From Schizochytrium sp. TIO01 (lineage: Eukaryota; Protista; Bigyra: Labyrinthulomycetes), in NCBI GenBank assembly GCA_004764695.1, contig SMSO01000031.1, forward strand, positions 9,712,037 through 9,776,036: a stretch of 64,000 nt of DNA. Direction: 5' to 3'. Below the pieces are notes generated by a model, which saw only the letters and a program-made list of their open reading frames with translations, did not search any database and was not told the origin of the DNA. Shown in pieces: positions 16,913 through 64,000 of the stretch (within the stretch, counting starts at the first letter, position 1; each line of letters opens with the position of its first letter). The position numbers and the translations under genes were made by a program.

Positions 16913-18031
16913 GCACTTGTCCAAGAAACATTTACGCCTTAATCTAAAGATTTCCTCAAATCTATCTTTTAAATTTTTTAGGATTAACAACATAATCAAT
17001 GCCATGTGCCATGATTTACTCTTTTTGCCCAGTGAGTGAGTGAGATGTGTTGTTTGGGCGAACAGTCCAAAACGAGCGTGTTATAGGCAAGAAGGCATTT
17101 TTTGTTGCTTTGATTCGTTTAGGCGACGACATGAAAACGTTTTCGTTGTTGCGATGGAGTAGAATAGCTGTCTGCAGACTTTGAGATATTTCTACGTTCT
17201 GAAAGTTAAGAATCAGACTGCCCGAGTAAATAGCGCTCTGCTTCATCGGAGTTGGTGATGATGGTTTCCATTCAAAGAGCCATTAAATTTTTCATATGCT
17301 GAAGCTGTAAGTAGGAAGGGGAGATGTCACACAGACATATAACTGGATTATACTTGCAGGCTCAGGAGCTCACTCTGCTGCACAGTTTGTACGTTTATAG
17401 GAGATTTTGAAGCAATCCGAGTCAGCGAACTCGAGTTCCCGTAACAGAACTCTTCCCATTTAGAATTCCTCCCTTTTTGTTCATAGCAGCATCCAACCAA
17501 GCTCTTGGACAAGCTTTTTGATTGGCCCTGTAAGAATTGTCATTTTTCAAAAGGAACGTGCCAACATCAAAATACCAGTGTTTGAAGTATTTCTCATGGT
17601 AAAATGAGTTGGCTGAAAGTATTTCTTTTCTCTTATTGGTTGAAGTTAAGGTCAACGAGTCATGTGCAATTTAATGAATGCATGATAACAACCTAGTGAT
17701 TGGAGAGTCCCATCCTCATGAATTACACTGCAACAATGATGACTCTTTACGAAAGTTAACAATGCATCGAAGATCTCTTGTAGGTTTCACTAACAACTGT
17801 TGTTGCGATGTTCATCAATCACAGTAACTGGCACAAAATGGAATCATGAAATCGTGATTTACATACATGGCAATGTTGTTTCGGAAGCCGCCAGACTATC
17901 CAATAGGATTACGATCATAGATTTTAATCTCAAATCACACGACTGCTGCAATTCTCTCAATGAGGCTATACGTATCAAACCATGGAGTTGCTTTCTTATA
18001 GTGCTAGGGTAAAAAATAAAAGGAGAAAAAA

Positions 18032-18149
18032 ACATTCAACACCGGGGCTTCGCATGCAGTCCCCTATCATACTACTGACCCGGCCCTACGCGACTTTACT
18101 TCTCAGTGCGAATGAGATGAGGTGTTACCCGCGTGGTATGATCGAATGT
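18032..18149 (-). rRNA. 5S rRNA (copy 1)
   Basis: Reverse complement reads ACATTCGATCATACC...GAAGTAAAG...GGGTCAGTAGTATGATAGGGGACTGCATGCGAAGCCCCGGTGTTGAATGT (118 nt, paired ends), followed by an oligo-T Pol III terminator. Confidence 0.93.
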
Positions 18150-18604
18150 ACCTTCAGAATGGTGCATACTCTATATATACATAGTATTCAATGGGTTGTT
18201 TTACTTCTTACTTCTATGACTATATAATTCATCATAGGTAGTACTAAGGGGTAAGGGGTAGTATTGCTAGAACCTCTGGAGCAATATCACTGCAAAAGAG
18301 ATTCTAGTAGTAAGCTTCTGGAAATAGTAATAGTCTTGAAAGAGCGAGAAAGAAAGGAGGTCAGCACATGCAGAACCCGAGGCTGAGTAGGTAAGGTTAG
18401 GTTTAAACTAGTAAAATATCCTTTTACTTCGATCCTTCTTACGGGAAACCATAGTAACTCAGAAAGTCAGGCACCAAGGAGTTGCAGCTTCACATCCAGC
18501 AGGTTCGAAACCTTCTGCGACGCCTGGGACTGTGCCACGAGCTTCGCTGAGAACGTACACGCACGCGCCCGCTGGTTGAAGTCTAGATCTTTCCTTACTG
18601 CACG

Positions 18605-59993: not shown

Positions 59994-62900
59994 AAGAAGT
60001 TTTAAATACCTTAGTTTTTGTTAAACCTTGTTGCTGGTCTGTAGGACTATGTGAAGGATATTACTATTTTATAGATTCATAGGATTATGAATGTGCTAGA
60101 AAATTATTAATTATCATAATATAGAGCGTGTAGGTGATGGAAATATTTTCATTGAATATTAAGATTGACAATTTAAGAAGCGAATAAATTAAACGCTGCA
60201 AGAGTCATAGACAACATTCTGAAAGACGTTGGAGAACAATACACAATTAGTGACCGCGCATGCAGCAGCCAGTGATTTTCAAGAAGTGAAGTGAAAAATT
60301 GTCGTAAAGCTCAAATCCCCGATGTTTGCATTTAGAAACAATGATTGAGGGTCATTGTATGAATAAAATATAACCTGACGTTAAATAATGCCTTATAAGT
60401 CCATAATTCTTCATACACATCCTGGAGTGTGAATGTGAAGGTAAGTTTAGAAGTCGTTTTCAAGTTTATCAAATCCCTGCACCCAAATTTTTGGTTAGTA
60501 TTTATTAAAGTATTACTCGAGCTTCAGCTTTTTTAAGCACATGGTTTGCTCGTGACGACCTTTCCAAGTTTGAGAAGGCTCGATAAATTATGAAAATGCA
60601 ACAACTTCTGAAGCAACGTCTATGGGGAAGCTTGACCATTGTTTTTCTGTTTTTCTATAGTGTCAGACAAAATATTTAATGACACATGTGATTTAATAAC
60701 TAATAACTTGTTGCAGAATGATCAATAATGAGAATGTGAATCCCTTCTCCAACAAGGATGGCGTCGTTGTGCATTGTTGTGCATTGAGCGAAAATGATGT
60801 TGCAGGCCTCATTCAGTACCAAAGCCATATCTATTCAGGTGTCTCACCCAAATGTAAATTAACGCCACCCTTCAATGCGAAATCTATGTAATCAGTTTGT
60901 CTGTGTCTAGAAGCTCAATAAACTCAATACTATCCTTTTCTCTTTCACACTCTTCATTAGGCCTCACAGACCACCTTACTAGAGCTCGTTCTCTTGTCAG
61001 ACTGCCTCTGTACGGTCCATTGCAGAAGCTAATATGCAAAAGCTAGATTTAGCAAACCTAAAATGTTGTATTCTGGTAAAGTATTTATGATATAGACTGT
61101 ATTCAAATAAAAAAGCAGCTAGAAGAAGAAGCGCGTGATCACGCAAAAGCTCGAGCAGTCAATAGTATCATGGTAATATCCTAACAAAGTGTCTGGTGTA
61201 CTTTAATGGCTCATTTCTGGTATAATCTGATCACTGTTTCGATAAAACTCAGTAAGCAATCTCTTTTTGAACGCAGATTCTAACGCCGTATATCGAGCGA
61301 CATGAATGTAAGAGCTGCGTACGGCATTCAATCCACCAGGCAGCTGGCGCCCAATAGTGTCATGAGATGGACTCACGTCGTATAAATTGTCTGGAAGAGC
61401 AGAGCCTTACCGTGGATGCATTGCCTTCCTTCCTCCTTTCATTTCACGACCATCATTGCTTGGACGGCTCCACATGCTAGTCTGCTTCACAATCTTACGA
61501 CGAAGGTAATTGTTTTAGTTTATGCACATTCATTCTGAAAGCAAAGGGATTGTAGTATATTAATTAGCCGTGGCGTTATATAGTGCAACGTAACTTTCTA
61601 GTTTCGAGATGGCCTGATTTTGTTTAATCGCAAGAACAAATTCGTACACCAACAATCTACGCTCGAATGAAGCTGAACGAATCACTCATATCCGGCATAA
61701 AACTCGTCTGAAAATCCAAAGCATGCAACACTGATCAGAACTGGATCTCAAGAAACCCGAACATTTATGAATCAATGACAGTGACGGGTGTCTAGGTGTT
61801 CGTAGCTGTACTTAATAAGTGTCTACTGGGCATAACATCATTCTTGTAAGCTCTGCTACTCCGATGATAAGCTTGTAGATATACTAAGATGGAGTCGAGC
61901 AGCATTGCATCAGCCTCTAAACTTGCCCTCAAATCCTCACGTTCAAAGCAACTCTTTCTTCTTTATCTGGTCCCAACGTTCATCTTGCTTACACAACTCT
62001 TCAGTACTCTCACTCTGACCAAACATTTGAAACACTTTGTGAATGTTTACTAAGATTTTCCCAAATGGCTTAGAACCCATTTTTCTTCTTGGACCCTTTT
62101 CACTCTTAGTGCACTGTTTTGCGACTCATTCTAGACCTCATCCGATTCCTTCTTTAGTTCAATCAGTGTCGCGTTTCCTAGTTGATTGGAAGGCAATCGG
62201 AGAGAAGAAAGAAGGGATCTGAGCAAGGATAGGCTAGCCTTCAGAATGGTGAACGAAGAGGTTGCGTGCGTGGAGCGCAGTCGCAGCTCTTTGAGAAAAC
62301 AAAGTTCATCAGAGTCAGTTAGGTTAGCTATGTGTGGGCTAAGAAGACTTGGCTTATGTCGCCGGTGAGACTTGACTGATTGATTATTTTGTGTGTTTTG
62401 GGCATGCTTGCTTGTGGAGCTTCTTCTTCTTGGAGAGGTGTGCAATTTCCTTGTTGCACTTAAGCGTGCACAATAAGAGGATTGCGTTTTAACTCTGAAA
62501 GATTTTCGATTGAAAGATATTTCTTTAAACTTTACTTTTTAAATGGAAAAGTAAAAGAAATCTTTAACTTGAAAGAAGTAAAAGTAGTTATTATATTTTA
62601 AAAAAAAATTATAAATGGAGTATAAGGGGAATGCATTCATTAGACATCTTGTATTGAAACGGTCTAGAGGGCGAGGACCTCAGTAAGAATTATCTTTTCT
62701 AACGTAGTTGTAATGACCTTGGGTCAGCAGGTGAGGATGCAAGAGCTTTCTTCGATCTTCAAACTGCCACAAGCAGCCTGTGACAAGCAGCCTTGGACTG
62801 AACGAGATTATGATTGAGACGTCCCTGTAGATAAACCCCTGTGAACGTGCACATACTTGGTTGGTAAGTTTCAATACTGTGCAAGGGAGGAGTTATCTTT

Positions 62901-63771
62901 CGTGTAGTTCGAAATCGGCTAAGTTTTTCTTTACCTTTCTATTTGTTGCTATCCCTGTTCAGGGTATTTTCAATTTTTTTTCAAGTCATAAATATATATA
63001 TGTCCTTATTCGTCTTTAGTATCACAGATACTTCCAACTGTTCATGGCAGCAAACATGACCCAAGGTACCAGATCCAAGTTTTTGGAAGAAATTCCCCGC
63101 AGCAATTTTCACTTTTTAAATTTATAGAAATTCCGGTACAAATATTTGGAAATTTCCCAAATTTGCCACCATTGGATTTGGTCTTTCAAAACATCCAAAA
63201 CAAGCAAACACCTACAATATCCATCTTCGGTTTCTGCATCGGACCGGCCCTTGTTCAACGCGGCCACTGAACGGGAAACCGTCAGACAGAACAGAACAGT
63301 TGGCAAGTTTCCAACTGTTTGCCGGTTTTGTGAGTTCTCGAGGTGGCGCGAGGAAGGGTGTGTGCGGACGGGTTCAACTCTGTTGGACTTGTGAAGCTCG
63401 AAAATACTTCCTGATTAATGCGCTAAGATTGGATCTGAGACAGCGTGTGCCGTTTGGGTACATTTTGAAGCTGTTGCGGTTCTTGAAGCTTCGTATTGTT
63501 ACCGTAGATCTTCGGCAAAGTTTTGATCTGAACCGAAGGCGTGAGGACCGTTGCCTGTGGATGAATATTTCTTCAGAAGCGTGGGCAGCACTTTCACATT
63601 CGAAGTCTTCCCCTAGGGCTGTCTGATTTAATAAAAAGACATTCCTTCTGGGCGTGAGATTGGTCAAGGGTTGAAAGGACAAATTGGCTGAGTTTGAAAT
63701 ACACTTGGATTGTTAAAGAAATTTTACTTAGAATGGTTTTAGTACCATTTTAAATGAAATAAAGTATAAGC

Positions 63772-64000
63772 AATTCTGGGTTGATCCCCTCCCCCAGTAG
63801 TCACTTGCTCGGCTCAAAGATTAAGCCATGCATGTGTAAGTATAAGTGCGATGTACTGTGAGAACTGCCGAACGGCTCATTATATCAGTAATAATTTCTT
63901 CGGGTGTTGCTTTTATATGGATACCTGCAGTAATTCTGGAAATAATACATGCTGTAAGAGCCCTGTATGGGGCTGCACTTATTAGATTGAAGCCGATTTT
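63772..64000 (+). rRNA. 18S rRNA 5' end (second copy, truncated by the window; contains indels)
   Basis: Matches 30527 onward (CTCAAAGATTAAGCCATGCATGTGTAAGTATAAG...) with several indels in the first ~130 nt. Confidence 0.85.

Follow-up and report, generated by a model that had tools for sequence, protein, structure and literature searches.

Leucine-rich-repeat genes in the ribosomal DNA spacers of Schizochytrium sp. TIO01 and their probable diversification by exchange among arrays

The final 64 kb of contig C30 in the 64-Mb genome assembly of Schizochytrium sp. TIO01 (GCA_004764695.1; SMSO01000031.1, positions 9,712,037 to 9,776,036; this whole stretch is called the window below) contain two tandem arrays of 385-bp units, one of 18 units (19460-26360) and one of 11 (55238-59399), each situated between a 5S and an 18S rRNA gene. 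The placement of such regular arrays in ribosomal DNA (rDNA) posed a question: are they spacer, or do they encode proteins? Arrays of this general description are known from Aurantiochytrium limacinum, in which LORE-TEARs of group 0 (~385-bp units, ~9 copies) lie between 5S and 18S genes at chromosome ends, and those of group 5 (~421-bp units) between consecutive 5S genes; at these ends, the 18S-28S genes are oriented toward the telomere and the 5S gene in the opposite direction. In the preprint on the telomere-to-telomere assembly of A. limacinum, LORE-TEARs are treated as spacers without GenBank similarity that perhaps act in chromosome-end maintenance (Collier et al., bioRxiv 10.1101/2023.06.15.545109). 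Matched by description only, the 385-bp arrays of the window correspond to group 0, and a 427-bp array that belongs to a gene termed gene B corresponds to group 5. This correspondence, along with matches to MMETSP transcripts described below, suggests that the source is A. limacinum or a close relative. The preprint, in contrast to the present study, gives no leucine-rich-repeat (LRR), exon or gene reading of these elements, and the words “leucine” and “LRR” occur in it 0 times; our literature search also found no paper combining Aurantiochytrium, leucine-rich repeat and subtelomere.

We present evidence here that the LRR genes in the rDNA spacers are real genes. Taken as a whole, it is probable that the 385-bp spacer repeats are the exon–intron units of these genes and that the genes are diversified by exchange among arrays. 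This proposal is a re-interpretation of the LORE-TEARs, and its closest biological parallel is the LRR-ROCO family of Ectocarpus.

The 385-bp repeats as exon–intron units

Each unit consists of an 84-nt exon, which has CAG and GTAAGT borders and encodes one 28-residue LRR of the ribonuclease-inhibitor (RI) type, and an intron of ~301 nt. The introns are in phase 2: each exon supplies the third base of the codon split at its start and two bases of the codon split at its end. The first array belongs to gene A, which runs on the plus strand from an ATG at 18605 to a stop at 26840. Exon 1 of this gene (18605..18669) starts with the ATG and comprises 21 codons and 2 nt of a split codon; its donor is GTAGGT, and that of most copies in the genome is GTAAGT. 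Eighteen LRR exons (84 nt each), alternating with ~301-nt introns, then occupy 19578..26219, and a terminal exon (26504..26840) contributes 1 nt, 111 codons and a TAG stop and encodes a putatively helical tail. The second array belongs to gene C (54805..59993, plus strand), which has the same layout: exon 1 at 54805-54869, 11 LRR exons at 55390-59390, and a terminal exon at 59675-59993 that ends in TAA. Intron 1 of gene A holds a (TTGC)n microsatellite (18713..19309; 149.5 copies according to TRF) that is also found in intron 1 of other copies, and intron 1 of gene C holds a (GCTT)n run.

A further 27 arrays were fetched from the same genome. Units were pulled out by BLAST homology of the exon and its flanks, independently of the reading frame, and the exons were analyzed one by one, not as a joined protein. 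All 368 exons proved to be exactly 84 nt long, with an LRR period of exactly 28 residues; AG acceptors were present in 368/368 and GT donors in 367, the last being GC. None of the 368 contained an in-frame stop. From base composition, ~52 stops would be expected at the three most variable codons (the probability of finding none is ~2e-23), and ~14 more would be expected if the observed number of framework changes were randomly placed. Likewise, the introns of 285 units had experienced 327 indel events and the exons none, against the 91 expected in exons at the intron rate. The exons are under selection against stops and frameshifts.

The repeats also conform to the RI-type class of LRRs in their period (28–29 residues in that class), their LxxLxLxxNxIGxxG core and their profile match. 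When searched singly against Pfam LRR_6 (PF13516; cut-off 23.4 bits), the best exons scored 23.4–24.1 bits and other exons 17–20 bits. These scores lie at or near the cut-off because the intron splits the repeat, such that an exon covers only profile positions 10–24.

Both ends of the gene are conserved as well. The ATG and the frame of the first exon were kept in 13/13 aligned copies, one of which has a 9-nt in-frame deletion. The terminal exon lies in the right phase behind a conserved acceptor ~285–325 nt past the last LRR exon, and its frame stayed open for 104–111 codons in all 18 of the copies collected in the first round, despite nucleotide identity down to 75%. Genome-wide, at least ~70 such tail exons were found, and only 2 contained a stop. 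A Pfam search with the short tail returned no match. A predicted model of it features two long helices (pLDDT 69.5, moderate confidence); a fold search with this model was dropped, as a helical hairpin of moderate confidence is too unspecific. A second, distant family of tail-like open reading frames (ORFs), with 39–42% identity and 114 open codons, was observed at many chromosome ends (e.g., C24:3989710-3990000, C30:15170-15460 and C5:7436-7726), in one case ~1.6 kb upstream of an 18S gene. Other LORE-TEAR groups may therefore belong to genes, too.

Are such genes transcribed? A search of 1.84 billion proteins with a profile of the tail produced five matches, the best of which were ORFs of MMETSP transcriptome assemblies. 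The tail is carried by four MMETSP transcript ORFs, namely P0006 and three with different tail paralogs. P0006 is the most informative: it reads through twelve residues from an intron 3′ end, an LRR exon of the last type, the split-codon Glu and then the tail. The predicted 284-nt intron has thus been removed exactly at the modeled site. Two proteins from other sampled organisms, P0002 and P0010, have contiguous RI-type LRRs followed by a homologous tail, and the contiguous P0010 protein scores 81.8 bits against LRR_6.

From these data, we propose that RNA polymerase II most likely transcribes the genes, which share their direction with the 18S-28S cluster, and that each message would join a short ATG exon, 6–20 exons of 84 nt flanked by phase-2 introns, and a tail. 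In general, such a gene would begin ~455 bp from the divergent 5S gene and stop ~3.7 kb short of the 18S gene. The LRR-LRR splice junctions in this scheme are predicted from genomic sequence.

Several observations weigh against a coding role. One unit (L010:5505-5590) is degenerate, with several 1-nt insertions or frameshifts; it is the sole such LRR unit seen and reflects either decay of the exon or an error in the local sequence. The framework codons have a ratio of nonsynonymous to synonymous polymorphism (pN/pS) of ~0.93, which signifies weak amino-acid constraint outside the frame itself; framework uniformity therefore appears to be due mainly to homogenization rather than to strong amino-acid constraint. 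The corresponding ratio of substitution rates (dN/dS) in the tail, ~0.7–1.3, also indicates weak constraint. Among the transcripts, P0006 keeps the intron upstream of its LRR exon, and no LRR-LRR junction was present in those found. Finally, the transcripts are only 85–90% identical to the best copies in this genome, and thus either derive from a close relative or were assembled chimerically.

Could the repeats then be non-coding, as the LORE-TEAR literature supposes, and serve chromosome-end maintenance, G-quadruplex formation or rDNA regulation, with the LRR frame a relic of a captured gene? Such a role would suit tandem repeats that sit in an rDNA spacer, whose introns are conserved as much as the exons and contain a G-run motif and small microsatellites, whose framework has the pN/pS noted above, and for which the preprint reports no GenBank similarity. 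However, it leaves unexplained why 368 exons have 0 stops and 0 indels when ~66 and 91, respectively, are expected, why splice sites are intact throughout and the start and tail exons conserved, why variability falls exactly at the concave-face positions of the LRR (see below), and why a spliced transcript (P0006) exists. Moreover, the class of non-coding rDNA spacer sub-repeats (enhancers and spacer promoters) is marked by an absence of coding constraint, and these units are constrained. We regard the non-coding alternative as very improbable. The repeat DNA could nonetheless have a structural role alongside coding. Each unit has a conserved G-run motif near offset 150, which could form the G-quadruplexes reported for LORE-TEARs, and the introns contain a variable (GATG)n microsatellite (e.g., 56347-56385, 57535-57562 and 57940-57971).

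Hypervariable residues and exchange among arrays

If the units are exons of LRR genes, what distinguishes one from another? Nucleotide diversity (pi) amounts to 0.67–0.75 at codons 2, 3 and 5 and at the junction codon, compared to 0.05 in introns and 0.04 in the rest of the exon; a single intron column of 301 has pi >0.4. Between 14 and 18 different residues occur at each of codons 2, 3 and 5, and ~10 at the junction codon. Numbered along LxxLxLxxNxL, the variable residues fall at positions 5, 7, 8 and 10, and these positions of an LRR line the concave, ligand-binding sheet. In all, there are 275 hypervariable exon types, 225 of them private to one array; the variable residues of gene C share nothing with those of gene A.

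Two further features of the exon were noted. Codon 8 is dimorphic, being either TCA (Ser) or GAC (Asp), which differ at all three bases, and the last Leu codon has a synonymous third base that shows tight linkage with the junction codon. These patterns imply that the variable sites travel as short multi-base haplotypes. We also considered adenine mutagenesis of the kind performed by diversity-generating retroelements and rejected it: all four bases vary at the hypervariable sites, and the changes between recent duplicates are swaps of whole triplets, as is typical of templated conversion.

The first-pass annotation of this locus, made from the DNA alone, had proposed that LRR cassettes could be exchanged among chromosome ends. 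We examined this idea after leaving out a few groups of near-identical arrays, which may be recent copies or assembly redundancy. Introns were nearly as similar between arrays (94.1% identity) as within them (94.5%), and for 182/285 units, the nearest intron relative resided in another array. By comparison, identity has a median of 87% in the unique 5′ blocks and drops to 75% in the most divergent tails, with unique flanks overall at 74–87%. The similarity of two genes in their 5′ blocks was uncorrelated with that in their 3′ blocks (rho −0.06; 120 pairs from 16 non-redundant genes). Individual pairs illustrate this reassortment: in one, the 5′ blocks are 99.5% identical and the tails belong to different families; in another, the 5′ blocks are 96% identical, and one gene has the short tail and the other a Roc-COR-TIR tail.

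Near-identical pairs, analyzed separately, bear on how the exchange takes place. Their variable sites differ 11.5 times more often than their introns (11/345 vs 18/6320, P = 9e-8), and the differences are clustered into tracts and swap whole triplets, a pattern that marks templated conversion. Together with the homogeneous introns and the uncorrelated gene ends, these tracts bear out cassette exchange among chromosome ends. The same annotation had cast the near-identical rRNA genes as the homology anchors, and this part was not supported. Anchoring in the rRNA genes alone would move whole genes with concordant ends; the ends are discordant, which places breakpoints inside the genes and makes the arrays themselves the homology substrate. 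One candidate event was rejected: two units recur in gene A with the same variable residues, as though from a recent block duplication, but the block is 94.7% identical, i.e., at background.

We envisage the following process. Unequal exchange, consistent with the varying array length, and patchy gene conversion among hundreds of units at all chromosome ends would generate and maintain diversity, and the same exchange and conversion would keep introns and framework ~94% identical everywhere. Selection would purge stops and frameshifts and keep the variable codons different. Breakpoints within the arrays would reassort 5′ ends, LRR cassettes and effector tails.

Diversity might also arise within a clone, either by mitotic or somatic conversion of cassettes, in the style of lamprey variable lymphocyte receptors (VLRs) or trypanosome VSGs, or by regulated exon skipping. 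All exons are 84 nt long with phase-2 introns on both sides, and any pattern of skipping would therefore stay in frame; whole-triplet swaps at variable codons between near-identical arrays would also be consistent with somatic conversion. Nevertheless, the differences recorded here separate loci within a single assembly, and germline conversion accounts for them. A within-clone source is, in our judgment, quite unlikely. Under the germline process favored here, the proposition that each rDNA unit carries a different receptor can be taken in two parts: nearly all arrays do differ, as the 225 private exon types attest, and “receptor” names a function that their products may have.

Linkage to the rRNA genes

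How firmly are these genes tied to the rDNA? In the window, the block of a minus-strand 5S gene, a plus-strand LRR gene, a spacer of ~3.7 kb and an 18S gene occurs twice, as the first-pass annotation had described; Rfam and repeat finding reproduced its coordinates. The first 5S gene (18031..18149, minus strand; Rfam RF00001, 96.5 bits) is oriented divergently to gene A, its 5′ end lying 455 bp from the ATG, and is 100% identical to the 5S copies at other arrays. From the stop codon of gene A, a spacer of 3.69 kb (26841..30526) extends to the 18S gene; it is ~88% identical to its counterpart in the second unit, and a scan revealed no ORF of ≥150 aa in it. The Rfam-annotated rRNA cluster of this unit follows on the plus strand: 18S at 30527-32311, 5.8S at 32394-32544 and 28S at 32697-36050. 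In the second unit, the 5S gene (54237..54355, minus strand; Rfam) lies between the 5′ ends of genes B and C, the distance from the gene C stop to the 18S gene is 3.78 kb, and the 18S gene itself (63773..64000, plus strand; Rfam) is cut by the end of contig C30. The start of this second 18S (63794-64000) is 94.7% identical to the first copy, and other 18S copies are 99.3–100% identical; the copy may be divergent, or the consensus poor where the contig ends.

The 385-bp unit has at least 401 matches on many contigs, mostly near contig ends, and the 5S-LRR-spacer-18S block recurs at most of the 27 further arrays. Such genome-wide recurrence puts the pattern far beyond chance. In 19 of the 23 arrays with enough flank, a 5S gene lies 0.83–1.43 kb upstream in the same divergent orientation, and in 14 arrays an 18S gene lies 3.7–4.9 kb downstream. 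The notion that LRR genes are built into the rDNA unit thus holds for most arrays but is not absolute. An intact upstream 5S is absent in four arrays; one Roc-COR-TIR gene (L004 + L030) is rRNA-free from ~0.2 kb before its first LRR exon to >15 kb past its last; and the short-tail array L029 (C13:4.015 Mb) has no rRNA gene within its 10-kb stretch. To our knowledge, it would be very unusual for a eukaryote to have spliced protein-coding genes built regularly into the rDNA unit at nearly all of its chromosome ends.

This linkage may be incidental: real LRR genes could ride on copied subtelomeric blocks, with the rDNA adding nothing to their diversification. The rRNA genes are ~100% identical everywhere and the gene flanks differ by 13–26%, so the two are homogenized separately; some members of the family have no adjacent rRNA genes; and, as described above, the breakpoints fall in the arrays and not in the rRNA genes. 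On the other hand, the distances from 5S to ATG and from tail to 18S are tightly kept across most ends, arrays of the gene B type likewise lie between 5S genes, and this regularity of spacing suggests a maintained unit. Incidental linkage is accordingly possible, if on the unlikely side.

The location of the arrays at chromosome ends and their mosaic genes, produced by ectopic exchange, are the features of a subtelomeric contingency family. Tentatively, one can imagine that every chromosome end of Aurantiochytrium holds, within the rDNA spacer, one member of a recombination-diversified repertoire of intracellular LRR sensors with helical, Roc-COR-TIR or kinase-RBR tails, the subtelomeric rDNA acting as a diversity generator like the subtelomeres of var and VSG genes. 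Such a repertoire might switch or undergo conversion during clonal growth and shape standing mirusvirus infection.

A few details of the other arrays deserve mention. Three near-identical units (L003, L013 and L016, at C30:5.48 and 5.52 Mb and C5:1.79 Mb) each have a tandemly duplicated 5S gene, and two of them form an inverted pair ~35 kb apart inside contig C30; these could be a genuine palindrome, the product of scaffolding that joined chromosome ends, or redundancy in the assembly. The telomere-side stretches L021 and L022 contain no tandem repeats, and the sole tandem repeat of L030 (2399-2787; 51 bp, 7.6 copies) is unrelated to the LRR units.

Alternative tails, known systems and neighboring features

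Not all arrays lead into a short tail. Gene B (44498..52984, minus strand), which lies between the tRNA cluster and the second 5S gene as had been annotated, has an ATG exon and at least 12 one-LRR exons (84 nt each, one of 96 nt) in 427-bp units, which make up the third array of the window (47604-52738). Two small exons follow, and then a 922-codon ORF that encodes a coiled coil, a Ser/Thr kinase (Pfam Pkinase, 1.3e-29) and Cys-rich, RBR-like fingers. Elsewhere in the genome, a Roc-COR-TIR ORF of ~850 codons follows the array in five arrays (L004/L009, L005, L015 and L026); genes A and C of the window are without this alternative tail. In L004 and L015, the Roc domain was detected with E-values of 5.9e-18 and 3e-16, COR-A with 1.5e-11 and 3.8e-12, and TIR_2 with 8.1e-13 and 6.3e-12, all past the cut-offs. 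Roc is directly followed by COR in both, as is diagnostic of ROCO proteins. As read from the DNA, the L015 junction would lead from one further 84-nt LRR exon across an 86-nt intron to an in-phase acceptor of the Roc ORF; L004 has a matching in-phase acceptor, and all five arrays have a partial BLAST match to the extra final LRR exon. A sequence search of the PDB with the TIR region gave only weak matches to bacterial TIR domains. The region contains a Cys-x-x-Glu motif at the presumed place of the catalytic glutamate of NADase-type TIRs.

No signal peptide or membrane segment was seen in these proteins, and they therefore look cytosolic. The product would be a cytosolic LRR solenoid whose concave sheet exposes four hypervariable residues per repeat. 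It would end either in a helical tail (~105–111 residues) or in an extra LRR and Roc-COR-TIR, with kinase and RBR-like fingers in the sister type, gene B. If translated, these LRR proteins are candidates for sensing pathogens inside the cell, among them perhaps the mirusviruses that persist in Aurantiochytrium.

Several known systems invite comparison. In the LRR-ROCO family of Ectocarpus, each LRR is one 72-nt exon encoding a 24-residue, plant-type repeat, the exons are shuffled, and the concave face is under positive selection (PMC3341825; PMC11378527). Both systems occur in stramenopiles and have single-exon LRRs of a length that is a multiple of three, shuffling, Roc-COR downstream of the LRRs (as predicted here for some copies) and a proposed role as immune receptors. 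Indeed, the symmetric one-LRR exons, shuffling and diversified concave face that characterize the Ectocarpus type were all found here. The differences are considerable: the exons described above are 84 nt long and encode 28-residue, RI-type repeats, the introns are homogenized across the genome, and in place of ROCO domains most copies carry a short helical tail, whereas linkage to rDNA or subtelomeres is not reported for Ectocarpus. The literature on brown algae reports no TIR tail.

With the var genes of Plasmodium and the VSG genes of Trypanosoma, the arrays share a chromosome-end location, large families and genes made mosaic by ectopic recombination. Those genes, however, encode surface antigens of parasites and have no rRNA linkage, in contrast to the predicted cytosolic LRR proteins of a free-living saprotroph. 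Lamprey VLRs also employ LRR cassettes with hypervariable concave-face residues and conversion-like copying between them, but their assembly is a somatic one that cytidine deaminases carry out on incomplete germline genes; in the present genome, the genes are complete in the germline and vary from locus to locus.

If our proposal is correct, a culturable and transformable protist with persistent giant-virus relatives would possess a large, immune-like receptor repertoire in which LRR modules are joined to TIR, ROCO and kinase-RBR tails. The diversification of such a repertoire, and the use of rDNA or subtelomere recombination for it, would become testable. The brown-algal principle of shuffling one LRR per exon would also extend to a distant stramenopile lineage and a different LRR class.

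The remainder of the window agrees with the earlier account that ordinary genes stop at ~16.9 kb: the last of them before the first 5S gene is an enoyl-CoA hydratase ORF at 16088-16912. Just 3′ of the 28S gene, four plus-strand tRNA genes (Trp, Phe, Val and Thr; ARAGORN and Rfam) form a cluster at 36862..40020. Between this cluster and gene B, a 229-codon ORF (40988-41677, plus strand) constitutes a truncated, inverted paralog of the kinase C-lobe and RBR-like fingers of gene B, and is probably a pseudogene fragment.

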